Sequence record: LC727699.1
DNA length: 64,000 nt
Strand: one strand, 5' to 3'
Shown here: positions 17,544 to 63,121 of the stretch, piece after piece
Position numbering within the stretch: the stretch's first letter is position 1
Layout of the letters: each line of letters starts with the position of its first letter
Notes under the pieces: generated by a model
Database searches by the model: none
The model's input: only the letters and a program-made list of their open reading frames with translations
Told to the model about the DNA's origin: nothing
Program-made: the position numbers and the translations under genes

Positions 17544-17569
17544 ACCAGCCCTTCGGGGCTGGTTTATTT
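17544..17569 (+). terminator. Intrinsic terminator
   Basis: ACCAGCCC-TTCG-GGGCTGGT followed by TTATTT. Confidence 0.85.
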
Positions 17570-17894: not shown

Positions 17895-18177
17895 TATCAT
17901 GACAGTAATTATAGGTATTTTGTTTCTGATTATAATGATGGCTTTAATTAACTGGGGTTATTATGCCATCAAACACACGATAAAGTGTAACAGGCTTTAT
18001 AAAGAAGCACTATCAATTATTGACAATATGAGTGATGGTTTATCTGAATACCAGTATACAGTAGCTATTGGACGTTTACGTAAAAAGGCATACTCTATCG
18101 ACCATTTAACTGCTGTTAAAATGTTTGAAGCATTAGACTTAGTTATTAAAGATAAGTCAAGAAAGAAAAATAAATAA
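17887..18177 (+). CDS. Hypothetical membrane protein
   Basis: N-terminal hydrophobic helix IMTVIIGILFLIIMMALINW. Confidence 0.75.
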   Translation: MNDIMTVIIGILFLIIMMALINWGYYAIKHTIKCNRLYKEALSIIDNMSDGLSEYQYTVAIGRLRKKAYSIDHLTAVKMFEALDLVIKDKSRKKNK

Positions 18178-18185
18178 GCATAAAT

Positions 18186-18243
18186 AGGAGAGCTATTTAG
18201 CTCTCCTTTATTGCATTAAATTTTTTTTGAAATCTATATTACA
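18186..18243 (+). promoter_or_regulatory. Terminator plus early-promoter cassette (class B)
   Basis: AGGAGAGCT hairpin, then CATTAAATTTTTTTTGAAATC-TATATTAC-A; 30 bp identical to 33327-33356. Confidence 0.8.
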
Positions 18244-18278
18244 TATTTGGTCAAGTCATATCAAAATAGGTAGTTATA

Positions 18279-18452
18279 ATGCTAGCATTACATTCACTAC
18301 TATTATTAGTTATAGTGATTTGTTATATAATTCATAAGTGGTTGTGGTATACTTTCAATATGTTTAAACTAAAAGACATTATTAAAAATAAAGACAATTT
18401 AACTAATGATGAACTATTAAAATTACTCATTGATAAAATAAAGGCAACCTAA
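18279..18452 (+). CDS. Small membrane protein (57 aa)
   Basis: MLALHSLLLLVIVICYIIHKWLWYTF...; AGGT RBS; TAATG-coupled to the next gene. Confidence 0.7.
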   Translation: MLALHSLLLLVIVICYIIHKWLWYTFNMFKLKDIIKNKDNLTNDELLKLLIDKIKAT

Positions 18453-18919
18453 TGTATCCATTCTTTACAGGTAATGAGAAAGTTACTGTAGATGTTCTTG
18501 ATGATAAACATAATCTACATAGAAGTTGGACTGATTATAAACATCCCATCACGACGCGTGTGGACGGTAAACTAACCAATGTGTGGTATAAAGTTGAACC
18601 ACCGATGAGTGCTAAGGATATTGAAAATAACTTTACAATTGACAAAGATAAAGTTAAATTATCTAATCGTTTGCACCAAGCTTTAGATGCAACGTTGATT
18701 AAAAATGAATTAGAAGAGTTTAACAAATTAATTGATCTATGCGTAAAACATGTTAATTCAGTTAGTATTCATCTAGGTCTTACTATTTGGAAATTAGCAG
18801 ATACTGTAAAATATGAAAAAGCAGATTTAAAGAAACTATTTAATGCACATTATACCAAATCTACTGAACTTGTAAAAGAAAAGAATATAGTGCCCTCAGT
18901 AGAAGATATCTTCCTATAA
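18452..18919 (+). CDS. Hypothetical protein
   Basis: 155 aa, translationally coupled. Confidence 0.8.
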   Translation: MYPFFTGNEKVTVDVLDDKHNLHRSWTDYKHPITTRVDGKLTNVWYKVEPPMSAKDIENNFTIDKDKVKLSNRLHQALDATLIKNELEEFNKLIDLCVKHVNSVSIHLGLTIWKLADTVKYEKADLKKLFNAHYTKSTELVKEKNIVPSVEDIFL

Positions 18920-18941
18920 TTTATTTAAAGGTAATACAAAT

Positions 18942-19850
18942 ATGCTAAAGGTAAAATCATTACTCACTGGCCATATTCTTCGAGCTACCTATGATTGGTT
19001 TCTTGAGAATAACTTCAGAGATATTCTAATTGTAGCACATACTCAATTAGTACCTGATTTATCTGAGGTAGCTCTAAAGCATGCGAAAGAAGATCACACT
19101 ATCACTTTCAATATCCATCCACGCTGTGCAAAGAATTTTTATATCAGTGACGAATATATCTCTTTCAATGTAACAGTAAATGGAGTTGGGGTCAGTATTA
19201 AACTTCCTCTTTATGCAGTATTGGGTGTAGTTACACCTATTGATGATAATTCTAACGCATTCTTTGAAATGCCACTAGTAGATAGATATCTCAATGCAGA
19301 TACTATTCGTGCAACATTAGAAGGAACTGTTAATAATGTAGTTGACAAAAACCCAGTATTAACTACCGTAGGTAATGTCACTGAGGTTAATTTTAAAAAT
19401 AAAGCCGATACCACTAATGGTAAGTTAGTTGTAAGGAATACATCTGAGAATGAGCATGATCAGATGATTGAAAGCGCCATTAACAGAGTAACTGAATTTA
19501 GTAATCCAGAATTAGATGCACATATTAGAGTAGCGGTAACTGTAATTAAACAGAATGCACCAGAATTAATTATGGATTGGTGTGAGCGGGTTATTAATTG
19601 TACACGTAATGAAAACTATCAGGATAACATCAATGTACTTATGATGGAACTCCTCAGTTACCCTATTTCAAATGTGGTTAGTGAATCAACTGTGGACTCG
19701 GGTGATAATACATCTAATTCATTTGACAATGATGTAAATAAGATGGTTGAGGATTTCAATAATTCTTCCAATTCGCAGGTTATTATTAATAAACCTTCTC
19801 GTCCTACCGGTACACCAAAACTCACTGTTATTAAAGGTGGTAAGAAATGA
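18942..19850 (+). CDS. sspB: SspB-like ClpXP adaptor with central insertion
   Basis: LRATYDWFLEN...ITFNIHP...ISFNVTVNGVGVSIKLPLYAVLG aligns with E. coli SspB LLRAFYEWLLDN...IVLNIAP...VRFNARFGG...VSVPLAAVLA; C-terminus RPTGTPKLTVIKGGKK resembles the XB peptide RPALRVVK. Confidence 0.8.
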   Translation: MLKVKSLLTGHILRATYDWFLENNFRDILIVAHTQLVPDLSEVALKHAKEDHTITFNIHPRCAKNFYISDEYISFNVTVNGVGVSIKLPLYAVLGVVTPIDDNSNAFFEMPLVDRYLNADTIRATLEGTVNNVVDKNPVLTTVGNVTEVNFKNKADTTNGKLVVRNTSENEHDQMIESAINRVTEFSNPELDAHIRVAVTVIKQNAPELIMDWCERVINCTRNENYQDNINVLMMELLSYPISNVVSESTVDSGDNTSNSFDNDVNKMVEDFNNSSNSQVIINKPSRPTGTPKLTVIKGGKK

Positions 19851-20104
19851 ATGCAACTTTAGCAATTCTTTTTAGTAGTATCAGTATCGCTGGTTATCAA
19901 GCCAATGGTGCATCGCAGTCAACCGCTGAGTTCTCTGACATGGCTACTTGTTTTAGCGCGATTGAGCGCATTCAAAAACTAGCTAAAGCAAGTGCTATTC
20001 GTAATAATGTAGAGACTGTAAAAGTCAGTGATGGTGTTCTATTACGTTATTTTTCTTCTAGTACTAGTAAAGTAGAACATACTCTAATCTGTGTAAATAA
20101 ATAG
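19847..20104 (+). CDS. Small exported or membrane two-Cys protein
   Basis: Hydrophobic N-terminus; F.DMATC...LICVN pattern like 62279..62500. Confidence 0.7.
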   Translation: MNATLAILFSSISIAGYQANGASQSTAEFSDMATCFSAIERIQKLAKASAIRNNVETVKVSDGVLLRYFSSSTSKVEHTLICVNK

Positions 20105-20112
20105 GTACGGAT

Positions 20113-20820
20113 ATGTCTGAGAAAATGTATTTATCTTTTTCTGGAATTGGACACAATGACGTAATCAAACAAGATCTTAATGGATTCGTTCCAATGGATG
20201 TATCAACTATTGATAATGAAGTGGCTGATCGATTATTTTATACTCCATTCAATAGTTCTGAACCAGGTACCTCATTACCTAATGTTGCTAATGTGGTATT
20301 CAAGGTATTACCTATCCATATCGAGGATAACACTATCTGTGTTTTAGATAGTTGTTCTAGTACCGAATACTCATTGAATGACTTAGTTGATACCAGTGTC
20401 TCATCATTAGAAACATATGGCCCATTAATAGATTTACGTAGTAGTGATCCAATTGAGACATATGCTAATCAGGCAGTGTATACTTGGTTAAATAAGAATA
20501 TCTGTGATATCGAATTTGAAGTACATGGCGGGCTGCAAGTGCAACTAACTGCTGACCAAGTGCGTTCCAATGTTAATGCATTTGTAGCAGGTATTGATCT
20601 TGACATCGACGATAAATTGATGGTATATGTGGTGATTAAAATCAATGATCGTTTATACGATGCTTGGTCTAGTCAACATGTGGTGGAACCATTAACAATG
20701 TATCATGTGCAAGGTGGTCATGAGCCTATTGTCTATAGTGAGACCCATATTGAAAATAGCCTATTGCGATATGCTAAAGAGAAAGGTTGGGCTGAAATTT
20801 TGACTCGTATTGGTCTGTAA
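20113..20820 (+). CDS. Hypothetical protein
   Basis: 235 aa, AGGT RBS. Confidence 0.85.
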   Translation: MSEKMYLSFSGIGHNDVIKQDLNGFVPMDVSTIDNEVADRLFYTPFNSSEPGTSLPNVANVVFKVLPIHIEDNTICVLDSCSSTEYSLNDLVDTSVSSLETYGPLIDLRSSDPIETYANQAVYTWLNKNICDIEFEVHGGLQVQLTADQVRSNVNAFVAGIDLDIDDKLMVYVVIKINDRLYDAWSSQHVVEPLTMYHVQGGHEPIVYSETHIENSLLRYAKEKGWAEILTRIGL

Positions 20821-20884
20821 TAAAAATACTTCTTATAGACTAATAATATAGGTAAGATACTAGCCGATTGGTTAGTTGCGCTTA

Positions 20885-20904
20885 GGGAGTCCTTCGGGAC
20901 TCCC
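20885..20904 (+). terminator. UUCG hairpin (weak U-tract; terminator or stabiliser)
   Basis: GGGAGTCC-TTCG-GGACTCCC. Confidence 0.5.
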
Positions 20905-20925
20905 GTATATCGTCTAGGAGGTTTT

Positions 20926-21219
20926 ATGTATACAGTTACACTTGAACAAGTAGGACACCGTATACCGTCTAGTTTAAGTGCTTTTGTAATTAGACCGTTT
21001 GAAAATACCATTACGCATAATGATACGTCTTATTACTTGATCATGGGTAAAGATGATTTCGATAACATGCACATGGAATGGCGAGATGTAGCTGTAGTTG
21101 ATAGTCAAGCCGTTATAGTTGCTACATACACTCCATCGAAAAACTCATTTAATCTTGTAAAAAATGAATTAGGTATTCCAGTTAATATCAAATACAAACG
21201 GATAGAGGTTGATCTATGA
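20926..21219 (+). CDS. Hypothetical protein
   Basis: 97 aa, AGGAGG RBS. Confidence 0.8.
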   Translation: MYTVTLEQVGHRIPSSLSAFVIRPFENTITHNDTSYYLIMGKDDFDNMHMEWRDVAVVDSQAVIVATYTPSKNSFNLVKNELGIPVNIKYKRIEVDL

Positions 21220-21246: not shown

Positions 21247-21447
21247 ATGGATCGTCTTGATGAAAGAATCGCATTCAGTGTAAAGTCGTACAAAATTTTC
21301 AATGCTCTCTCCCATGGCCGAGTTCGGGCATTGATTATTAACTTTAAAGATGGTAAGGGTACGATCGTATCTATTAGTGATGAGCGCCGCCATGATAAAC
21401 ATCTCTGGTTCAACTGTGGACTAGTAGACAATCCGAGGATCAAGTAA
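21247..21447 (+). CDS. Hypothetical protein
   Basis: 66 aa, TAATG-coupled to thyA. Confidence 0.7.
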   Translation: MDRLDERIAFSVKSYKIFNALSHGRVRALIINFKDGKGTIVSISDERRHDKHLWFNCGLVDNPRIK

Positions 21448-22913
21448 TGGAACAATATCTTAATTCAATCCGTTTAGTTAAAGAACACGGTGTACATAAA
21501 GGTGACCGTACTGGTACTGGTACTCAGAGCATGTTTGGTCAACAAGAACGTTATAGTCTGCGTAATAATCAGCTACCAGTTGTAACCACCAAGAAGATTC
21601 ATCTAGCTTCTGTAATTCATGAATTGTTCTGGATGCTGTCAGGTGATACTAAGGTGGATTACCTGATCGCTAATGGTGTACGCATCTGGAACGAGTGGGT
21701 TAAACCTGAAACCGCAGTATATGAGCCGATGACCGATGAGGCCGTTCTTAAAGCAGTAACTGCCCTCATTGGTGCCCCATTCGTAATGTACTTACATTGT
21801 ATGAACGATGACTCTACTCCATTCATTGAGACTGTAGCGGAATTCGAGTCGGGTATGACTCCAGAGACTATTCAGGCCTTCTGGGATGAATATCCAGTTA
21901 ACCGTGAGGAAATCCAATACATCATTGGAGTTAGCGTAACGTCGTGGAATAGGTTCGCTACTGAAGGGTTCGATGAAGCCAAAAATCCTGAAGGTATTCG
22001 TGCTGAATATAACAAGCGACTGTATCGTGCTTTGATGCATAAAGAACCAGAGCGTCTGGTCGGCGGCGATCTAGGTGCTGTTTACGGTAAGACATGGCGT
22101 AATCTTGAAGACACTCGTGTAATCCCTAAATATGAGTGGTTCGATTATGAGAAGCGTGGTTTTGACTTCGTGGCGGATATCCCAGGTACAACCATGGAAA
22201 CCGATAGATGCGTGGTTACTCGACGTATCGACCAAATCCAAGACATCATCGATCAACTTCGCACCAACCCGGATTCTCGTCGGATCATTGTTTGTGCATG
22301 GGCGCCACATCTTATTGATGAGCAGGCACTCCCACCTTGCCACGCATTTATTCAGTTCTGGACCCGTGAACTGACCGTAGATGAACGAGTGCAAGCTCTA
22401 GACCAAACCCAGTTCGAAGCTGATGCTTATCATGATAAGATTAGTGGTGAGATTACTCGTGGTCAACCTCCATTCGATAGTGCTGAGCAGGTTAAAGCAC
22501 TTCTGCGTGTCTGTCGTGGTTATGAAAAGGCTACAGATGAAGCAGTAGTAGAATGGCTGGATCAACATGGTGCTCCGAAACGAGCCATCAGTTGTCAACT
22601 CTATCAAAGATCTTGTGATACTTTCTTAGGAAAACCCTTTAACATCACATTCTATAGTCTGCTGACTCACATGTTAGCTAACCAAATGAATATGATTGCT
22701 GAAGAGTTTATCTGGACTGGTGGTGATGTACATATTTACTCTAATCACCAAGAACAGACTGATCTTCAATTAACTCGTGAACCGAAGGTTCTACCAACTA
22801 TTCGTTTCAAACAAGAAGCTATTGGTAAAGATATTCGGGAAATTGGTGTAGATGATTTTGTTATCGAAAACTACGAATATCATTCACACATTGCTGGTAA
22901 AGTTGCTGTCTAA
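21447..22913 (+). CDS. thyA: Thymidylate synthase with three in-frame insertions
   Basis: DRTGTGT, TTKK, ELFWMLSG, IWNEW, GDLGAVYG..WR, SRR, ALPPCH, LYQRSCD..LG.PFN and GDVHIYSNH. Confidence 0.95.
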   Translation: MEQYLNSIRLVKEHGVHKGDRTGTGTQSMFGQQERYSLRNNQLPVVTTKKIHLASVIHELFWMLSGDTKVDYLIANGVRIWNEWVKPETAVYEPMTDEAVLKAVTALIGAPFVMYLHCMNDDSTPFIETVAEFESGMTPETIQAFWDEYPVNREEIQYIIGVSVTSWNRFATEGFDEAKNPEGIRAEYNKRLYRALMHKEPERLVGGDLGAVYGKTWRNLEDTRVIPKYEWFDYEKRGFDFVADIPGTTMETDRCVVTRRIDQIQDIIDQLRTNPDSRRIIVCAWAPHLIDEQALPPCHAFIQFWTRELTVDERVQALDQTQFEADAYHDKISGEITRGQPPFDSAEQVKALLRVCRGYEKATDEAVVEWLDQHGAPKRAISCQLYQRSCDTFLGKPFNITFYSLLTHMLANQMNMIAEEFIWTGGDVHIYSNHQEQTDLQLTREPKVLPTIRFKQEAIGKDIREIGVDDFVIENYEYHSHIAGKVAV

Positions 22914-22920
22914 CATAAAT

Positions 22921-22945
22921 GCCTCCCTTTGGGGAGGCTTTATTT
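22921..22945 (+). terminator. Intrinsic terminator
   Basis: GCCTCCC-TTTG-GGGAGGC followed by TTTATTT. Confidence 0.85.
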
Positions 22946-49357: not shown

Positions 49358-50143
49358 ATGCATCGTCGAACTATGTACAGATTTAGCTTATCATATTCCA
49401 ATAAACTTATTAATAATAACCCACTTGGTTTTACAGTCGAGAGTTATCTTGAAAGCTGGTTTGACAAACTCAAGTGTCGATTAACTAAAGGTTATACCAA
49501 AAGCCATGCTATTCATTTTCGTGGAAGTTGGAAATACTTTGAATTAGATCAATATAAGAACAATGCTTTCTTCAATCAATATCACATGGTGATGCAGTCA
49601 CTAGAAGATCTAGAAAGAAAGATTAGTGGAGTGATTGGGTTAAGTATCAAAATCACTAAACCAGAACGACATTTATTTCATGTTCTATTTAACCATGAAA
49701 AGATTATTCTATCCCCTAATGGCATTATCTTTGATGTACGTGTTCCAAAACACACCGTGATAGCTAATCCTGATGTTATGGGATATCGTAATTGCAATGT
49801 AGATAAACTGACGGTATTTGGCGAGCGCTCTAAAGTTAACTATGTGGTTAAACAAGTACGTTATGCCTTAAAGCAGAAAGGGGTGACAACTGTTGCCAAT
49901 AGTTCAATGACTCGTTTTTTATATGACCTATTTCATCCAAAATACAGAGACAATCAAATTTATAACTACGGCATGACTATGTCTGATGTTTATGTAATGG
50001 CCGTATTCAAAAATGGGTATACGGAAATCTATGGTAAAGATGTAGGTGAAATATTTGAAAGTCATACTCTAGATTTTCTAGAACGTGAATACATGATCTG
50101 TGGACAATATTTTCCTAAGCTATCCAGAGGGATGCTAGTATGA
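49358..50143 (+). CDS. Hypothetical protein (start re-called from 49283)
   Basis: AGGA RBS before MHRRT; the track start lies upstream of the terminator. Confidence 0.8.
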   Translation: MHRRTMYRFSLSYSNKLINNNPLGFTVESYLESWFDKLKCRLTKGYTKSHAIHFRGSWKYFELDQYKNNAFFNQYHMVMQSLEDLERKISGVIGLSIKITKPERHLFHVLFNHEKIILSPNGIIFDVRVPKHTVIANPDVMGYRNCNVDKLTVFGERSKVNYVVKQVRYALKQKGVTTVANSSMTRFLYDLFHPKYRDNQIYNYGMTMSDVYVMAVFKNGYTEIYGKDVGEIFESHTLDFLEREYMICGQYFPKLSRGMLV

Positions 50144-51666
50144 TTATAGAAACCTTATTGCAATATTACGCCATGTTCATCGATATCTCTCAGAAGAATA
50201 TGGTTATGGGTGGAGCTATCGGAATGGCAATTGGTGGTTTATTCTGGACCACTCTAAGAGGCTTACCAAGTAAACTAGCTAGGTTCGCATTAAATCAGTT
50301 TACAGTTAGTCTACATATTACCAACATGGGTAATGGGCTGAACGAGAAGAACTTTGATTGTTTCATGGAATGGTATATTAAGCAGCCATTAGCTGGATTT
50401 AATCGACGTTTTTCAACTAATGTTGATGAGCAAAGTTATAGTGCAACTAAACAGAAAATTGGTGTTGGTTTTGGCTTACATTTCTTTCTGTTTAAAGGTA
50501 GGTTATTCTGGTTTGTAAAAGCACGCCGGGATAGTCAAAATGCCAGTCGAGATCAAATGGATATTACTATCCGTGGATTATCTAGGAGTAGTAAACTAAT
50601 TATTGATTTAGTAGATGCTTACCATTGGCGCCCAAATGAAAGGGGTCTGACTATTTCACATTGGGATGGTAACCGTTGGGGCAATGAGATTGAAGTTACT
50701 AAACGCGATATCAACACGGTGATTTTGCGTAAAGAGATCAAAGAAGAATTCCTTAATAAGATTGAAGAATTCTATTCTGATCGGAAATGGTACGATGATC
50801 GTGGACTACCCTATAAATTCACTTGTGTTCTAACAGGTCCTCCTGGTACTGGTAAAACCTCAATCAGTAAAGCGATTGCCTCACATTTTAATAAAAATGT
50901 TAGTGCACTGTCATTAGCCTCTATGACCAATGATAGTCTTAGGCGGGCATTTACTACACTACCTAAAGGTAATATTCTTCTAATTGAAGATTTCGATGAT
51001 ACCCCGGCAGTTAAAGATCGTGTTTTAAATGATCCTGTAAAACTAGATAAAGAGATAAAGGAATTAGAGAGGAAATATTCTTTTATTGATTTAATTGAAA
51101 AATATCCGTCTGCATGGGTTGATCTTAAAGATGACTATGAAGGATACTCTGTAGTTGGGTTTAATGACACCATCTATATCTTTGATGAAAATAGCGATGA
51201 TCAAGGTTTTGGGATAAGTGCTTATGCTATGGCTGAACTGGGTGTTTCAAAATGGGCCGATGAAAAAGATCCATTATTTACCACAATTCGCCGATGGTGG
51301 AAATTAAAGAAGTGCATGAAGAATGGAATCACGTATGAACAACCAGCTAGCGGATTAACTTTGTCAGCTCTATTAAATGGGCTAGATGGCATTGTTCCAC
51401 TAGATGAGACTATGACCATTCTAACTACAAACCATCCTGAGAATATTGATAAAGCACTTCTAAGGAAAGGTCGCGTTGATTACATGGTGGAGATTCCATA
51501 TCTACGAGATCAAGAAGTTAGGGAGTATATTAAACTAATGTTCCCTGACTTCGATATTCCTGAAGATATCAGATTTAAAGATCAGCCAGGGTGTGATGTA
51601 ATGGCGGCTTTTTCAAATAACCGTTATGACCCTAATGCTTTTATCAATAGTCTATTGAAATATTAA
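50140..51666 (+). CDS. BCS1-like membrane-anchored AAA+ ATPase
   Basis: N-terminal hydrophobic helix, GPPGTGKTS, LLIEDFD, TLSALLNGLDG and TTNHPENIDKALLRKGRVD. Confidence 0.85.
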   Translation: MIIETLLQYYAMFIDISQKNMVMGGAIGMAIGGLFWTTLRGLPSKLARFALNQFTVSLHITNMGNGLNEKNFDCFMEWYIKQPLAGFNRRFSTNVDEQSYSATKQKIGVGFGLHFFLFKGRLFWFVKARRDSQNASRDQMDITIRGLSRSSKLIIDLVDAYHWRPNERGLTISHWDGNRWGNEIEVTKRDINTVILRKEIKEEFLNKIEEFYSDRKWYDDRGLPYKFTCVLTGPPGTGKTSISKAIASHFNKNVSALSLASMTNDSLRRAFTTLPKGNILLIEDFDDTPAVKDRVLNDPVKLDKEIKELERKYSFIDLIEKYPSAWVDLKDDYEGYSVVGFNDTIYIFDENSDDQGFGISAYAMAELGVSKWADEKDPLFTTIRRWWKLKKCMKNGITYEQPASGLTLSALLNGLDGIVPLDETMTILTTNHPENIDKALLRKGRVDYMVEIPYLRDQEVREYIKLMFPDFDIPEDIRFKDQPGCDVMAAFSNNRYDPNAFINSLLKY

Positions 51667-57175: not shown

Positions 57176-57252
57176 TGGTGCCGCCACTCCGAATCGAACG
57201 GAGGACCTACGCATTACAAGTGCGTTGCTCTACCTAGCTGAGCTATAGCGGC
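57176..57252 (-). tRNA. tRNA-Thr(UGU)
   Basis: GCCGCTATAGCTCAG...CTTGTAA...GTTCGATT...GCGGCACCA; cloverleaf with encoded CCA. Confidence 0.95.
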
Positions 57253-57315
57253 GGAATCTTCTACATATAGTGTATATGAAAGTATTATTTTATTTATTAT
57301 AATAAATAAAGTTAT

Positions 57316-57345
57316 ATTCAAACATATTTAAACAGTATATCATTA
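57316..57345 (+). promoter_or_regulatory. Early promoter (class A, variant core TATATCAT)
   Basis: TTCAAACATATTTAAACAG-TATATCAT, near-identical to the 26158 cassette. Confidence 0.65.
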
Positions 57346-57399
57346 ACTTGATATTACTAAAAGTAATATTTTCTATTAATTGTAAATAGGAAACTAAAT

Positions 57400-57537
57400 A
57401 TGAATATCGACCCAAAAACTCTTGGCATTATTATTAGCACCACTATTGGCGCCGTAGGTGCTCTTATTCTTACGTATGGTATTGTGAGAGCAGTACGTGG
57501 GAATAATAAACCTGATGTAAAAGATGTAGCAGAGTAA
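57400..57537 (+). CDS. Lone + strand small membrane protein (45 aa)
   Basis: MNIDPKTLGIIISTTIGAVGALILTYGIVRAVRGNNKPDVKDVAE; AGGA RBS, own promoter and terminator. Confidence 0.75.
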   Translation: MNIDPKTLGIIISTTIGAVGALILTYGIVRAVRGNNKPDVKDVAE

Positions 57538-57545
57538 GATAACAT

Positions 57546-57572
57546 AGAGCTAGCCCATTAGGGGCTAGCTCT
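57546..57572. terminator. Terminator between convergent genes
   Basis: AGAGCTAGCCC-ATTAG-GGGCTAGCTCT. Confidence 0.8.
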
Positions 57573-57594
57573 TATATTTATTTTTTTATTTGTT

Positions 57595-58224
57595 TTAACT
57601 TGGGGTACTATAATAAATAAATTTAGTTAATTCATCTTGTTGTTCTTTGATTATATTATTTTTCGTTTGTTTAACATTAATGTAATATTCAATAAATAAC
57701 CAACGTCTATCATGTTTGGCTAAGTCTTTGAATTCAATTTTCTCAAATCGCCATGACTGTACAGTAGTCCTAATGAGATTACCGGATTTATTGATAATGT
57801 ACCCTTGCATGGCGTTAATGTGATCATCGATAGTAGATGTTGGTAAAAATATCAAATAAACACCATCTGTATTTTTAGTGTGCATACTTTTTAATTTATA
57901 CATCATTGGGTTAAAGTATTCATCACTTTTATGATAATCGCTTAATTCTAACACAGCATCAATCATCATTTTAGCGCTTTCAGTAACACCAACATTTAGT
58001 AAATAATCATTAAGCTCTTTTAATGAATTATCTGTAAGTGATGCATCTATGTGTTCTTCACTTATAGGTTCATTATAAACTAGTTTATTAATAGTTGAAT
58101 TAACAATATTTAGCCTATCGATATCATAAACTGCTAGTGTTTGTTTACCAACATTTATTTTTAAGTCTTTACCTGATTCATTGATAAAATCATTTAAATC
58201 TACTTCAGTAAAATGAAAAGCCAT
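57595..58224 (-). CDS. Hypothetical protein
   Basis: 209 aa, AAGGTG RBS. Confidence 0.85.
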   Translation of the reverse strand: MAFHFTEVDLNDFINESGKDLKINVGKQTLAVYDIDRLNIVNSTINKLVYNEPISEEHIDASLTDNSLKELNDYLLNVGVTESAKMMIDAVLELSDYHKSDEYFNPMMYKLKSMHTKNTDGVYLIFLPTSTIDDHINAMQGYIINKSGNLIRTTVQSWRFEKIEFKDLAKHDRRWLFIEYYINVKQTKNNIIKEQQDELTKFIYYSTPS

Positions 58225-58383
58225 TTTTATACACCTTTATGTTTTCCGTAGTGTTAAATTTTATTAACACCCGGTTTCAAGTTGAGTTATGTGTAGAACT
58301 AATCTACAAATAATATTAACTCTATGTATAATTTTACTTATAAATAGACCACTCTATATAGAGGGGTATTAAGTCATATAAAG

Positions 58384-58479
58384 TTATTTTAGTGTGGGTC
58401 TAAATACAAACATTACGTCTACTTCATCAGTTGGGTCGACATCATATTCTGTCCCAGTATTATCAATCGCAACCAACAT
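58384..58479 (-). CDS. Possible acidic microprotein (31 aa)
   Basis: MLVAIDNTGTEYDVDPTDEVDVMFVFRPTLK; GAGGA upstream. Confidence 0.4.
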   Translation of the reverse strand: MLVAIDNTGTEYDVDPTDEVDVMFVFRPTLK

Positions 58480-58695
58480 TCTCACATTCCTCGGTAAAGG
58501 GCTTTATGTGATTTAGATAGGCGAGTGATAAAATACCTAAATGCACTGAGATATTCTCTGATAAATCCTTTACCTTTATTAAAATTATCACCTACATGGA
58601 CCATTCAATCACTTTTATGTAGCTTGATTTCAATCAATTAAAGGGTATAACGAATGTAATGTATTTATACACGAATATAGTTATCATAAGCTCAA

Positions 58696-58986
58696 CTACT
58701 TGGGGTAAAAGAGTGGACGGAGATCAGTCTCATGGTATTCATCTTTGATATGGGAAAAGTACTTATTGAAATTATCCACACTATACGAAGTTCTAAGCCC
58801 ATTTGGCCAAATCACTAACATGTCACCAACTTCGAATGCCGTGATCATAGCCTCAAAGTCTTTTATGTTTACATGATCATTACCAAGTTTCACGAATCGA
58901 CATGCACGGAAACCACATTCCCAGTCAGACGACATCCATTGACCAGCTTCAGTAATCAGCTTTGCACGAACTAATGTCTTAGCCAT
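58696..58986 (-). CDS. Hypothetical protein
   Basis: 96 aa, overlaps the upstream stop. Confidence 0.8.
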   Translation of the reverse strand: MAKTLVRAKLITEAGQWMSSDWECGFRACRFVKLGNDHVNIKDFEAMITAFEVGDMLVIWPNGLRTSYSVDNFNKYFSHIKDEYHETDLRPLFYPK

Positions 58987-59164
58987 ACTTGGTACCCCAG
59001 TTTATCGTTTTGTCGAGAAGAGCTTGACTAGGTCGTTTATTACGAATCTGATTCTTAATAGACTCATTTAGCTCTTCCATCGTTTTCCGAACTTTAACTA
59101 ATCGTTCCTTTTGTTCATTTGTAGGAACACTACTAACTATATCTTGCAATGCTTTAAGTGACAT
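58979..59164 (-). CDS. Hypothetical protein
   Basis: 61 aa, AGGGT RBS. Confidence 0.7.
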   Translation of the reverse strand: MSLKALQDIVSSVPTNEQKERLVKVRKTMEELNESIKNQIRNKRPSQALLDKTINWGTKYG

Positions 59165-59226
59165 GTCTTTACCCTATTTGTATTCAGCTATAAGATTCAA
59201 CTACTGGGTACTTTTACAAGACGACA

Positions 59227-59250
59227 TAAAGGCAGCATTAGCTGCCTTTA
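59227..59250. terminator. Terminator after tRNA-Asn copy 1
   Basis: TAAAGGCAGC-ATTA-GCTGCCTTTA. Confidence 0.7.
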
Positions 59251-59295
59251 TAGTTTACATAGTAGTGAAATATAACTAAATCTAAAACTATGAAT

Positions 59296-59371
<76 letters not shown>

Positions 59372-59532
59372 AGAATTATGGCGATTTTATATTAGAGATG
59401 AGTTACTGACAACCTAATATAGATATGTAATAACTACATATTATTACAATCTGAGTATTATTTATTTCTTGTTATGACATTATGTAAATAACGTGTAGTT
59501 AATCTTATTAGAAACTATCAAAGTTACTAATT

Positions 59533-60045
59533 CTAACTAAAACGAACCACCATTACCTCTGTACCAAAAGTATCTGCAACCCACTGGTTAAATTCTTTAT
59601 CAGTGATACCGCGTAGGTTCAGATTAAATGAGGCATTGTCAACAAGAATATATTTTACAGACGATATTAATTCTTCTTTAATATCTTTTTGAATAGATGA
59701 TTCCTCAGGTTGATGAATATATTTACGGAGTTGGTGTGTAATTAAACAAGAAACAATATTATCTTTAGCATTCTGGAACTTAGCCAGTACAGCCTGTTTA
59801 ATTTTATCTTCTACAAATACAGCTAGACATTCGCCAGGATGACGATTAGCAAACTCAATCAATGCAGTTGTACTACCACATTGCCGACCTACAAATAATC
59901 CAACAGTCCTGTATTCACGAATAACAATATGACCAATAGAATTAGATCGATAATTAACCCAGTTCTCATTCGTTTTTTGAATTAAAGCATCTAGGATATC
60001 TTGGTACTTTACAATAGTTCTTACAAACTGATTAGAGTTAGTCAT
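59533..60045 (-). CDS. Hypothetical protein with degenerate P-loop
   Basis: GLFVGRQCGSTTALI resembles RQxGKT with Lys replaced by Ser; AAGGAG RBS. Confidence 0.75.
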   Translation of the reverse strand: MTNSNQFVRTIVKYQDILDALIQKTNENWVNYRSNSIGHIVIREYRTVGLFVGRQCGSTTALIEFANRHPGECLAVFVEDKIKQAVLAKFQNAKDNIVSCLITHQLRKYIHQPEESSIQKDIKEELISSVKYILVDNASFNLNLRGITDKEFNQWVADTFGTEVMVVRFS

Positions 60046-60169
60046 AATAGACTCCTTTATTACAATGTAGCATAGATTCAGTTTTTTAACTGGAATTAAA
60101 TGCCGATTTTGAAAAGGTGATAAAACCTTTTCTCATCTATAAATGAATTTATAATAGTAACAATGAATA

Positions 60170-60280
60170 TAACCAGGGGTGGCAAACCCCTGGCATTTAG
60201 ACACACTCTATAATAAGTTCTACCACCGAGTGTGTTTAGTGGATAGATTTAAGAATACTTTATTATAGTACTCTTACATA
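60170..60280 (-). ncRNA. Candidate three-hairpin sRNA, about 110 nt
   Basis: TATG at 60280, two stems, then the CCAGGGGT/ACCCCTGG terminator; no ORF. Confidence 0.4.
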
Positions 60281-60329
60281 ATATCATCGTGCCAGTATAA
60301 TTATCTAAATAGTTATAAATATTATTATT

Positions 60330-61337
60330 TTAATCAATGATTAATGGTGCTAGTTTTACCTGATAGATACCTGATAACAATTGGCTTTTCAACATATATG
60401 CTCCACCACCAACTGGCATTTTAGATCCACCTACAATGATCATGCTATTATCCGGACCTTTAGCTATAGATGAAATATTAAGGAATCCGATACCTAGTTC
60501 AAATGGTTCAGCCCATTTCCGGCGCCTAATATTAAAACGTTGTGCAAACATTTTAGTTACACCGCCGACATCAACAGCGTTAAGGTAATTAAAATAGTCC
60601 CCATCTACATAACCATTACCTTGCCAGATTGTTCCTTTATCAGCAGGTATAATCATCCAAGGTGTTTGCTCCCATATTAAGGTAGTTGCATTATATCGAT
60701 AAACTTCAAGATTAGGTATGTTCTTTGTATTATCCCAACCACCAAAATGGTAAAAGTAACCATTATAAAAGAATAACTGTTGACCTGAACGAGCACCACC
60801 TGAATAGTCTTGCCCGCTAAGCCAAGACTTACTTGATGGTTTTAATCGCATTGCGTTTACGCCAATTGGGTTAACGCATAGAATAAGATCATTACCATCT
60901 GATGCGGAGGCTGTGCCCCAAAGTGGTACGGGACCACTATATCGCTCAACCCTATTGCCTGTAGCTATATCAAAATGTTGTATAAAGTTAGATGTTCCCG
61001 TACCACCATTACCAGCCGAGTTCCATCCAGTAATACCACCATAAACAATAAAGTTATTCTTATGTAATGTCCCAAATCCTAAAGATACCCCTGGTAAGAA
61101 TGTTCCAGAAGCAGTTGCACCTATATCGGCAAATGGCGATATGGTAAAACGTCTGAACACAGTTGCAGCTGTTTGTCCTTCAGTATGATGACCAGATCCA
61201 ACATACAGTGTATTTCCATCCACATATGACATTGTACCAGCTAACGCTACAGGTAGATCACCTAATTTAATAATTTCATTAAATCCAACCAAGGGTAACT
61301 CTTCGCCTATATCTGGTGATAATAGTAATTCAAACAT
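60330..61337 (-). CDS. Kelch-repeat beta-propeller protein
   Basis: Repeats such as LHKNNFIVYGG, FYNGYFYHFGG.....VYRYN....W and DNSMIIVGG. Confidence 0.75.
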   Translation of the reverse strand: MFELLLSPDIGEELPLVGFNEIIKLGDLPVALAGTMSYVDGNTLYVGSGHHTEGQTAATVFRRFTISPFADIGATASGTFLPGVSLGFGTLHKNNFIVYGGITGWNSAGNGGTGTSNFIQHFDIATGNRVERYSGPVPLWGTASASDGNDLILCVNPIGVNAMRLKPSSKSWLSGQDYSGGARSGQQLFFYNGYFYHFGGWDNTKNIPNLEVYRYNATTLIWEQTPWMIIPADKGTIWQGNGYVDGDYFNYLNAVDVGGVTKMFAQRFNIRRRKWAEPFELGIGFLNISSIAKGPDNSMIIVGGSKMPVGGGAYMLKSQLLSGIYQVKLAPLIID

Positions 61338-61391
61338 GAGTGTGCTCTCAAGTAAATCATTTTAATTCATAAGATAACCCATGGCAACATA

Positions 61392-61415
61392 AAAGAGTAG
61401 CCGAAGCTACTCTTT
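61392..61415 (-). terminator. Terminator after the Asp-Asn tRNA pair
   Basis: AAAGAGTAGC-TTCG-GCTACTCTTT on the - strand. Confidence 0.85.
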
Positions 61416-61421
61416 AGAATA

Positions 61422-61497
<76 letters not shown>

Positions 61498-61503
61498 ATT
61501 AAA

Positions 61504-61580
61504 TGGCGCGCCCAAGGGGACTCGAACCCCTGACCACCCGCGTGACAGGCGGGTATTCTAACCAACTGAACTATGAGCGC
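61504..61580 (-). tRNA. tRNA-Asp(GUC)
   Basis: GCGCTCATAGTTCAG...CCCGC-CTGTCAC-GCGGG...GGTTCGAGTCC...GCGCGCCA. Confidence 0.95.
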
Positions 61581-61603
61581 AAACGTATGGACATGACTTC
61601 CTA

Positions 61604-61617
61604 CATAGTATTACATA
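61604..61617 (-). promoter_or_regulatory. Late-type TATG start (tandem, 10 nt apart) for the tRNA Asp-Asn unit
   Basis: TATGTAATACTATGTAG; similar TATG contexts at 57267, 59440, 60280, 63139 and 63833 (-) and at 13503, 22982, 53122 and 53623 (+); a 4-nt motif is weak evidence alone. Confidence 0.45.
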
Positions 61618-61632
61618 ACCAGTAATATTTTA

Positions 61633-61980
61633 TTACGGGCGATCAGTCCAGTGCTTGAAATAGTTACCATCCTTGGGACGATCGTACTTAGCAAGAATAT
61701 TTTTAAGTTCTTCGCCGGACAACTTAATACTATCGCCTACTGGGCTATCCAGTTCAGGGAAAGGTTCAGTTTTACGTGTAATGATTAAATTATCAGTCCC
61801 ATCTTTGAAGATAAAGATAAACTGCGTTTCATTAGCACTAATCTTTTTCTTAACGCAATGCTTTACTTCTGGATGTTTCTTGTGGATCGCTACAAAAGAT
61901 TCAACAAGAGTTAGCTTTATAAACTCAGGGCTAATAAATGTGAAATATACAGCGCTCTGCGTTGGGGTTAGATGATCCAT
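61633..61980 (-). CDS. Hypothetical protein
   Basis: 115 aa, GGAG RBS. Confidence 0.8.
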   Translation of the reverse strand: MDHLTPTQSAVYFTFISPEFIKLTLVESFVAIHKKHPEVKHCVKKKISANETQFIFIFKDGTDNLIITRKTEPFPELDSPVGDSIKLSGEELKNILAKYDRPKDGNYFKHWTDRP

Positions 61981-61982
61981 AT

Positions 61983-62270
61983 TTACTCCGTATGTTTGAG
62001 ATAGGCTTTAACTGCTTTAAGACCTTTATTAAAGAACATAGCTTCAACATAAGTAATGTTACTTACATCCTCGCCGATAAGTTCCCATTTGATGCAACGT
62101 GTAACAGCGTTGATTGTAATATCTAATCCGTTTGGGAATAGGGTTACTTCATCGGTCAGGTGAATCCAATCGGGAACCTTCGCTCCATTACGTAAACGGG
62201 GACTAAAAGTAAGATTATAAAGTGTTTGTAATGGTTGTCTCAATAGTTCTTTTTGTTCTTGATGTTCCAT
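61983..62270 (-). CDS. Hypothetical protein (start re-called from 62288)
   Basis: AGGA RBS before MEHQEQK. Confidence 0.75.
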   Translation of the reverse strand: MEHQEQKELLRQPLQTLYNLTFSPRLRNGAKVPDWIHLTDEVTLFPNGLDITINAVTRCIKWELIGEDVSNITYVEAMFFNKGLKAVKAYLKHTE

Positions 62271-62278
62271 GTATTTTC

Positions 62279-62500
62279 CTAGAGACATTTAAAAATATAA
62301 ATAGAATGGTTATCTCTTTCGGTTATCTTTAGAGTATTCTCATTTCGAATAACTTCAAGAGACTTGTATTTATGTTCCAGAATATCCAGATGAGAAATAC
62401 ACTGTTCCCTATTTTCAAATAGGATATTACTTTCATTAGTCGAAATGAAACCAAATAATCCAACTTTGATAGATAATACCAACATTATTACTGTATTCAT
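62279..62500 (-). CDS. Small exported or membrane two-Cys protein (start re-called from 62536)
   Basis: GAGGA RBS before MNTVIMLVLSI; FENREQC...IFKCL like 19847..20104. Confidence 0.7.
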   Translation of the reverse strand: MNTVIMLVLSIKVGLFGFISTNESNILFENREQCISHLDILEHKYKSLEVIRNENTLKITERDNHSIYIFKCL

Positions 62501-62526
62501 GTTTTCCTCAATGAGACAGTATAAAA

Positions 62527-62544
62527 CCTCCCCCAAGTGGGAGG
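62527..62544 (-). terminator. Terminator after the CAU tRNA
   Basis: CCTCCC/GGGAGG stem with TTTTAT tail on the - strand. Confidence 0.7.
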
Positions 62545-62552
62545 CTAGTATA

Positions 62553-62629
62553 TGGTGGGCCCAGCAGGACTTGAACCTGCGACCAAGCGATTATGAGTCG
62601 CCTGCTCTAACCAACTGAGCTATAGGCCC
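62553..62629 (-). tRNA. tRNA with CAU anticodon, most likely tRNA-Ile2 (lysidine, reads AUA)
   Basis: Anticodon arm GGCGACTCATAATCGCTTGGTCGC matches E. coli ileX as recalled; C4-G69 and C5-G68 TilS determinants; no initiator features. Confidence 0.9.
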
Positions 62630-62636
62630 TTTTTAT

Positions 62637-62930
62637 TTATTCTGGTAAGAATGTTCCATCTTTTTCACGGACTAATACACCTGACCATTTGAATGTATTT
62701 GTATCACTAACAGGGCACTCTCTAATTACATTGGTTCTAAATGTGCCATGTGGATAGGTTACAGTGAATGTAATATGATTATTACAAACATGCAATACAG
62801 AAGACTTTGCTTCTGTTAGATAGTGTAAGCCTTGAGCTAATTGAATATTAGTTAATTCAGGGTCACTAATAATAGCGTAAAGAGCTGTTCCTATAATTTG
62901 ATGTTCCCATGATATCCATTTATTATCCAT
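62637..62930 (-). CDS. Hypothetical protein
   Basis: 97 aa, lies between tRNAs. Confidence 0.75.
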   Translation of the reverse strand: MDNKWISWEHQIIGTALYAIISDPELTNIQLAQGLHYLTEAKSSVLHVCNNHITFTVTYPHGTFRTNVIRECPVSDTNTFKWSGVLVREKDGTFLPE

Positions 62931-62951
62931 CCTATTTACCTATTATTAAAA

Positions 62952-63027
62952 TGGTCGGAGTGGGGAGACTCGAACTCCCGACATCCTGCTCCCAAAGCAG
63001 GTGCGCTACCAACTGCGCTACACTCCG
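62952..63027 (-). tRNA. tRNA-Pro(UGG)
   Basis: CGGAGTGTAGCGCAG...CCTGC-TTTGGGA-GCAGG...GTTCGAGT...CTCCGACCA. Confidence 0.95.
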
Positions 63028-63036
63028 TATTTAAAT

Positions 63037-63121
63037 TGGTGCCCGAAGTCGGATTCGAACCGACAAGACCGTAGCCGGAAGATTTTAAGTCTTCTGTGTT
63101 TACCAATTTCACCATTCGGGC
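63037..63121 (-). tRNA. tRNA-Leu(UAA)
   Basis: 85 nt with long variable arm; GAAGA-CTTAAAA-TCTTC; ends GGGCACCA. Confidence 0.95.

Follow-up and report, generated by a model that had tools for sequence, protein, structure and literature searches.

A long SspB-like protein with a putative ClpX-docking tail in phiKZ-type Pseudomonas jumbo phages

Described SspB proteins and the gp232 locus

Bacterial SspB proteins (from E. coli and H. influenzae, 1OX9, 1OU9, 8ET3, and from Pseudomonas) are 126-165 aa long and consist of a folded domain, a flexible region, and a short ClpX-docking peptide. High conservation in SspB has been found only at the dimer interface and in the ssrA-binding groove (PMC9963277). 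SspB-like proteins are also encoded by phages. The first to be reported was gp18 of Pseudomonas phage pf16 (PMC5587285), a recent host-like copy of 128 aa that is about 55-68% identical to Pseudomonas SspB and has a canonical XB tail (KKPTLRVVK). [quoted passage not shown] A comparable SspB-like gene (00157) is present in the Erwinia amylovora jumbo phage pEa_SNUABM_54; its product is a short protein of 147 aa with a plain XB motif (…PKLTIVK) at the C-terminus.

We analyzed a window of 64,000 nucleotides (sequence record LC727699.1), which is DNA of a phiKZ-type Pseudomonas aeruginosa jumbo phage. The product of one of its ORFs (gp232, Table 1) was 100% identical to PHIKZ232 (AAL83133.1) of phage phiKZ and relatives, and over window bases 18000-21000 the identity was 100% with phage 'sp. 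LC' and 99.9% with phiKZ. The family to which gp232 itself belongs is PHROG 25970. The gene is labeled 'hypothetical protein' in most records and 'stringent starvation protein B' in two phiKZ-like records (Bobae and Churi). The likeness to SspB itself is thus already known from annotations, from PHROGs, and from one paper on a related phage (PMC10299810). A literature search found no functional study of PHIKZ232, RAY gp039, or pf16 gp18.

The N-terminal fold of gp232 is common to bacterial SspB (TM about 0.8), and gp232 is predicted to have the SspB layout as well, with a flexible region joining the folded domain to the short ClpX-docking peptide. Unlike bacterial SspB, gp232 is the product of a lytic jumbo phage and is about twice as long; the initial annotation had given 302 aa against 165 aa, and both lengths agree with the translated ORF and the full-length E. 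coli chain 8et3_Y.

Table 1. Features of gp232 and their positions in the window
Feature	Window position	Strand	Basis
PHIKZ232 (gp232)	18942..19850	+	ORF list; ATG start; 302 aa plus stop codon
SspB-like substrate-binding domain, residues 1-130	18942..19331	+	PDB, NCBIfam, AF2, Foldseek
Low-confidence linker, residues 131-168, N/T/K-rich	19332..19445	+	AF2 pLDDT 39-54
Four-helix module, residues 169-238	19446..19655	+	AF2 pLDDT about 90 (full model)
Second low-confidence linker, residues 239-266	19656..19739	+	AF2 pLDDT 45-58
Upstream tail motif KMVEDFN, residues 267-273	19740..19760	+	Aligns with KPLL[DN]FG (alignment A1)
XB-like putative ClpX-docking core RPTGTPKLTVIK, residues 287-298	19800..19835	+	Match to cellular and Pseudomonas tails
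C-terminal extension GGKK, residues 299-302	19836..19847	+	G299 and G300 invariant (alignment A1)

The gp232 gene is placed within a run of same-strand genes. Terminator-like hairpins were found at 17544-17563 and 22921-22938, the second directly past the thymidylate synthase gene gp235. A sigma-70 promoter scan gave fewer hits than in shuffled sequences and was uninformative for phiKZ. phiKZ, PS119XW, and a metagenomic phage contig share a gene order in which the SspB-like gene is followed by an overlapping ORF of 80-85 aa, by an ORF of 235-250 aa and, further on, by thyA. In the D6/Psa21/RVTF4 clade, the SspB-like gene is followed by an ORF of 224-241 aa and then by a gene for a BCS1-like AAA+ ATPase.

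The overlapping ORF in the window (19847-20104, +) encodes 85 aa, and its own ATG overlaps the gp232 stop codon. Its N-terminus is hydrophobic and signal-like, and it has two conserved cysteines. Homologs that likewise overlap the end of the SspB-like gene were found in PS119XW (E 2e-10) and in the metagenomic phage contig L010. The ORF is intact in the window; in the phiKZ reference it is interrupted by a single in-frame stop and appears in the annotation as two CDS, 232.1 and 232.2. The following ORF, gp233 (20113-20820, +; 235 aa), has no family. It showed weak collinear similarity to the ORF after the SspB-like gene in D6, Psa21, and RVTF4 (BLASTP E 0.001 over 63 residues; hhalign probability 4%), and gp233 and the SspB-like gene may be a conserved gene pair. 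The phiKZ homolog of the BCS1-like ATPase of D6, Psa21, and RVTF4 is encoded at 50140-51666 (+). This 508-aa protein (Pfam BCS1_N plus AAA) has an insertion of about 110 residues within the AAA domain relative to the Psa21 homolog, and its homologs are widespread among jumbo phages. The G+C content of the window is about 30-38% throughout. The thymidylate synthase gene gp235 (21447-22913, +) encodes an unusually long protein (488 aa) and forms a local G+C peak (0.43 versus about 0.33), and the terminator-like hairpin downstream of it is strong. Farther along the window, seven tRNA genes (Thr, Asn x2, Asp, Met, Pro, and Leu) are clustered on the minus strand at 57176-63121, and the GC skew changes sign at this cluster.

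The SspB domain and its conserved surface

Residues 1-130 of gp232 are a true SspB domain. The SspB fold had been proposed for the first 115 aa or so, and PDB, NCBIfam, AF2, and Foldseek all agreed on SspB. Residues 11-110 matched the crystal structures of E. coli and H. influenzae SspB (E 1.4e-8). Several NCBIfam models named 'ClpXP protease specificity-enhancing factor' matched gp232 (best E 4e-13), all far below their equivalog cut-offs, and the match to Pfam PF04386 (E 6e-5, 23.5 bits) was slightly short of the gathering cut-off of 27. PHROG 8945 ('SspB-like') was matched at E 2e-4. In the full-length AF2 model, which was built on an alignment of 81 sequences, pLDDT was above 90 across residues 1-130, and 13 of the 13 best Foldseek matches in the PDB were SspB (E 3e-8 to 5e-7; TM 0.74-0.83, normalized to the target). 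An exhaustive HMMER search of 1.84 billion representatives gave only 89 matches at E ≤ 1e-3, nearly all of which were SspB-sized, XB-tailed, and aligned over residues 5-125. The identity of gp232 to cellular SspB is only about 25-30%; with pf16 gp18 it is 29%, over the N-domain only. A weak Pfam match to FUR (E 0.0076) was set aside.

To examine the cargo site, we aligned 186 cellular SspBs with the phage proteins and defined conserved columns as those at least 70% identical among the cellular SspBs (n=46). At these columns gp232 has 17 matches, 2 similar residues, and 27 differences, counted as columns rather than placed residue by residue on the structure, in an alignment that is uncertain at about 25% identity. 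The retained columns include W19, N57, F75, G81, and P89, and the 27 changed columns are mostly changed in other phage members too. With 17 of 46 columns kept, gp232 lacks much of the conservation, attributed to the ssrA groove and dimer interface, that marks the SspB family. This comparison suggests that gp232 has kept the SspB scaffold and lost much of the conserved functional surface. Since gp232 is changed at over half of the positions that cellular SspBs conserve, a new cargo is favored over ssrA. Thus, ssrA binding by gp232 is doubtful and its cargo is probably not the ssrA tag, and dimerization is possibly altered as well.

The middle region, the tail, and the long SspB-like family

Between the SspB domain and the tail, an extra internal helical segment had been predicted in the initial annotation. 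The segment is real and small (about 70 aa): AF2 placed four helices in it (residues 169-184, 189-205, 207-218, and 226-238), and when the module was modeled alone, from three sequences, the mean pLDDT was 80 and the pTM was 0.70. Bacterial SspB has no such folded module within its leash. Searches with the module found nothing in Pfam, no fold in the PDB (best E 1.5), and only its own orthologue in BFVD. A weak match to PHROG 20304 (E 0.049) was uninformative as to relatives of the module. The module occurs only in phiKZ-type proteins and in P0002, a metagenomic relative of 61% identity, and is absent from the other family members in alignment A1. Therefore, it is a clade-specific insertion into the leash, made in the phiKZ clade, and not a feature of the family. 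The third helix contains Cys 212 and Cys 218 (C-x5-C; window 19575-19597), which are conserved in P0002.

In the full AF2 model, pLDDT stayed under 55 across residues 131-168 and about 240-258. The linker in front of the module is probably disordered, judging from this model, and its conservation is limited to the close relatives P0002-P0004. Residues about 129-197 (window 19326-19532), which comprise the AF2-disordered region and the first module helix, weakly resemble SSL7/exotoxin-1 (NCBIfam E 5e-6; PDB E 4e-4). Kinship with SSL7/exotoxin 1 (staphylococcal superantigen-like protein 7) was rejected, as the region is rich in N, K, and T and the scores fell far short of the family cut-offs. 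The likeness is probably compositional.

The tail of gp232, SRPTGTPKLTVIK, had been read as an XB-type ClpX-docking peptide, and its core, PKLTVIK, fits the C-terminal pattern of cellular SspBs at every position. We searched with pf16 gp18, which matched 7,292 SspBs, and took the cellular tails from the 120 matches listed; all 120 of these end in [RK]-P-x-L-[KRT]-[VI]-[VI]-K. When hits from the representative search and earlier searches were examined, 45 of 88 ended exactly in [LFM][RKTS][VIL][VIL][KRQ], a pattern that was seen a single time among 10,985 positions within the protein bodies. The likeness is closest to the Pseudomonas SspB tail, PRPSGRPSLKVVK, which was taken at genus level, as the named matches carry no P. 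aeruginosa label. It spans 13 residues: named Pseudomonas SspBs end in P-R-P-S-G-R-P-S-L-K-V-V-K, and gp232 has S-R-P-T-G-T-P-K-L-T-V-I-K, then G-G-K-K. Seven of the 13 residues are identical and two more are conservative, and the two tails agree beyond the core (R-P-[ST]-G-x-P-x-L-x-V-[VI]-K). In the six-frame translation of the whole window, P.L[RKT][VI][VI]K occurs a single time, at the gp232 tail. Its composition-based chance is about 1e-6 per position, and that of the longer Pseudomonas-like tail pattern is about 3e-11. The tail alone gave no SspB match when searched against PDB sequences, being too short a peptide for phmmer.

Unlike in bacterial SspB, the XB-like core of gp232 is not at the extreme C-terminus; an invariant GG[KR], with one more residue in gp232, follows it, and an additional conserved motif lies upstream. 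All 22 phage-type members have GG[KR] after the XB core, as against none of the 120 cellular SspBs among the matches listed. Fusions of the XB-GGS-bait type bind ClpX at about 70 nM, and the ClpX zinc-binding domain reportedly engages the XB motif whatever the position of the motif in the polypeptide (PMC12373786), and thus the GGKK extension is compatible with ClpX docking. The invariant GGK and the upstream motif imply a function beyond the canonical XB contact.

These features define a family of long SspB-like proteins (196-318 aa), which we assembled from alignment A1, a profile search, and phage records, and which comprises at least 22 clusters or records. Its members have an SspB-like N-domain, a very variable middle, the motif K-P-L-L-[DN]-F-G, a spacer of about 15-20 residues in which a basic residue (R287) is conserved, and a terminal motif, P-x-[LW]-x-[VL]-I-x-G-G-[KR], with 0-2 residues after it. 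In the phiKZ clade the upstream motif takes a degenerate form (K-M-V-E-D-F-N), and Trp replaces the key tail Leu in one sub-clade. Alignment A1 shows no variation at R287, P292, L294, I297, G299, or G300. gp232 can be aligned with every member and has the plan of the family. Identity among the N-domains is only about 24%, and the middles cannot be aligned. The orthologue in PS119XW (Pawinskivirus; 265 aa, syntenic) has the same last 11 residues as gp232, yet its N-domain is 24% identical and its middle is not alignable. Conservation of the tail despite divergence of the N-domain is the strongest argument for reading the gp232 tail as a docking peptide.

All named members come from Pseudomonas chimalliviruses: the phiKZ-like phages, PS119XW/PA1C and relatives, D6, Psa21, RVTF4, and Phabio. 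The SspB-like protein of Ralstonia phage FLC4-3B (135 aa) has a plain C-terminal XB motif, and those of Xanthomonas phage LucasX and Pseudomonas phage Noxifer have no C-terminal XB motif. The pEa_SNUABM_54 protein, unlike gp232, has no GGK extension, PLLDFG motif, or helical module, and it was missed by the gp232 searches and thus belongs to a separate lineage. In the literature searched, we found no description of the long SspB-like family of Pseudomonas chimalliviruses, of its bipartite tail, in which an invariant GGK follows the XB core, of the contrast with the plain-tailed SspBs of Erwinia and Ralstonia jumbo phages, of the orphan helical insertion specific to phiKZ, or of a loss of most conserved SspB positions as in gp232.

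Possible roles of gp232 in host ClpXP proteolysis

Tagged PHIKZ232 was diffuse outside the phage nucleus, while SEC-MS put PHIKZ232 in the shell-enriched, virion-absent set; the SEC-MS supplement records its detection and gives no partner (PMC10449902). Since PHIKZ232 and RAY gp039 are both outside the phage nucleus, they are in the same compartment as ClpXP. As far as can be judged from its sequence, gp232 probably lets the phage steer or block host ClpXP, which agrees with the retargeting or interference proposed in the initial annotation. In the explanation that we prefer, and to which we give nearly an even chance, gp232 is a cytoplasmic adaptor that sits on host ClpX via a host-mimicking tail and presents cargo other than ssrA-tagged proteins. 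The C-terminal peptide SRPTGTPKLTVIK-GGKK would mimic the Pseudomonas SspB tail that docks on the zinc-binding N-domain of ClpX, and gp232 would be tethered to host ClpXP through its long flexible linkers. The remodeled binding surface of the SspB-fold domain would hold the cargo, and the phiKZ-type four-helix module may supply a further surface. The local concentration of the cargo at the ClpX pore would thereby be raised, and the cargo would be degraded. All 22 family members retain the tail and all named members infect Pseudomonas, which argues for an adaptor, and the persistence of the N-domain in all members, although it diverges fast, argues that this domain has a function. Several observations do not fit as well. 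The cellular XB motif is strictly C-terminal (120 of 120 listed), while in gp232 the invariant GG[KR] follows it; this extension and the upstream PLLDFG-type motif have no counterpart in SspB, and thus the tail partner may be different or additional. The Leu to Trp change in one sub-clade, the enrichment in the SEC-MS shell fraction, a possible effect of the lost positions on dimerization, and the uncertain alignment at about 25% identity also count against it.

The tail evidence would equally support docking without delivery. As a decoy for the ClpX N-domain, with a host-like, bipartite, and possibly higher-affinity tail, gp232 would deliver nothing and would displace host SspB and other N-domain clients. 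Host proteolysis would be altered, for example by shielding phage proteins or by blocking ssrA-SspB delivery. The tail is far better conserved than the N-domain, gp232 has lost most of the positions that SspB conserves in its ssrA groove and dimer interface, and the second conserved tail motif could raise affinity, all of which would suit a decoy. However, a pure decoy would have no need of a folded SspB domain, which is kept in all members (W19, N57, F75, G81, P89), and the phiKZ-clade proteins have even gained a folded module; we regard a decoy as rather unlikely. The opposite possibility, that gp232 is an extra SspB copy supplied by the phage to do the ordinary job of delivering ssrA-tagged proteins and to clear more products of stalled translation, would account for the SspB fold and the XB-like tail, and host-like phage copies such as pf16 gp18 do exist. 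Yet the conserved positions of SspB are those of the groove and dimer interface, and the 27 of 46 columns that differ in gp232, mostly in its phage relatives too, together with the low identity to cellular SspB, make this improbable.

A further possibility is that the likeness to the SspB tail was inherited but the tail now serves a different partner, for instance a component of the phage-nucleus shell or the BCS1-like AAA+ ATPase that the phage encodes. In its favor, the invariant GG[KR] and the PLLDFG-type motif are missing from cellular SspBs. In D6, Psa21, and RVTF4, a BCS1-like gene is the second gene after the SspB-like one, and it has a homolog in phiKZ; the SEC-MS enrichment would fit a shell partner. 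However, this adjacency is seen in one clade only, and about 31 kb separate the two genes in phiKZ. Many jumbo phages with a BCS1-like gene were not among the matches of the SspB-like searches, and thus there is no apparent co-distribution. Moreover, the gp232 tail closely tracks the Pseudomonas SspB tail, and tagged PHIKZ232 was diffuse in the cytoplasm and off the shell. We consider such a partner improbable. An adaptor that tethers non-ssrA cargo to host ClpX remains our preferred explanation.

Phages inhibit or evade host AAA+ proteases, and to our knowledge no phage-encoded adaptor that redirects ClpXP has been demonstrated experimentally. In nucleus-forming phages the DNA is shielded, and thus the cytoplasm is the meeting place of host and phage proteins; a ClpX-tethered adaptor in this compartment would directly remove host factors. 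The family offers several handles for structural and proteomic description: its bipartite tail is conserved, its cargo side is variable, and one clade has a module of its own. The XB docking peptide already serves as an anchor in engineered bacterial protein degraders, and the tails of this family may reveal natural variants of it. More tentatively, and as a broader idea that we consider possible rather than probable, the Pseudomonas nucleus-forming phages might have a dedicated, fast-evolving family of adaptors that hijack host ClpXP with an upgraded bipartite docking tail and swappable cargo modules and so destroy particular host proteins. The docking tail would be made up of the XB core, the invariant GGK, and the PLLDFG-type motif, and the cargo modules would be the remodeled SspB groove and the phiKZ-specific four-helix module. 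The targets would be cytoplasmic host proteins, for example defense or stress-response factors. [quoted passage not shown]
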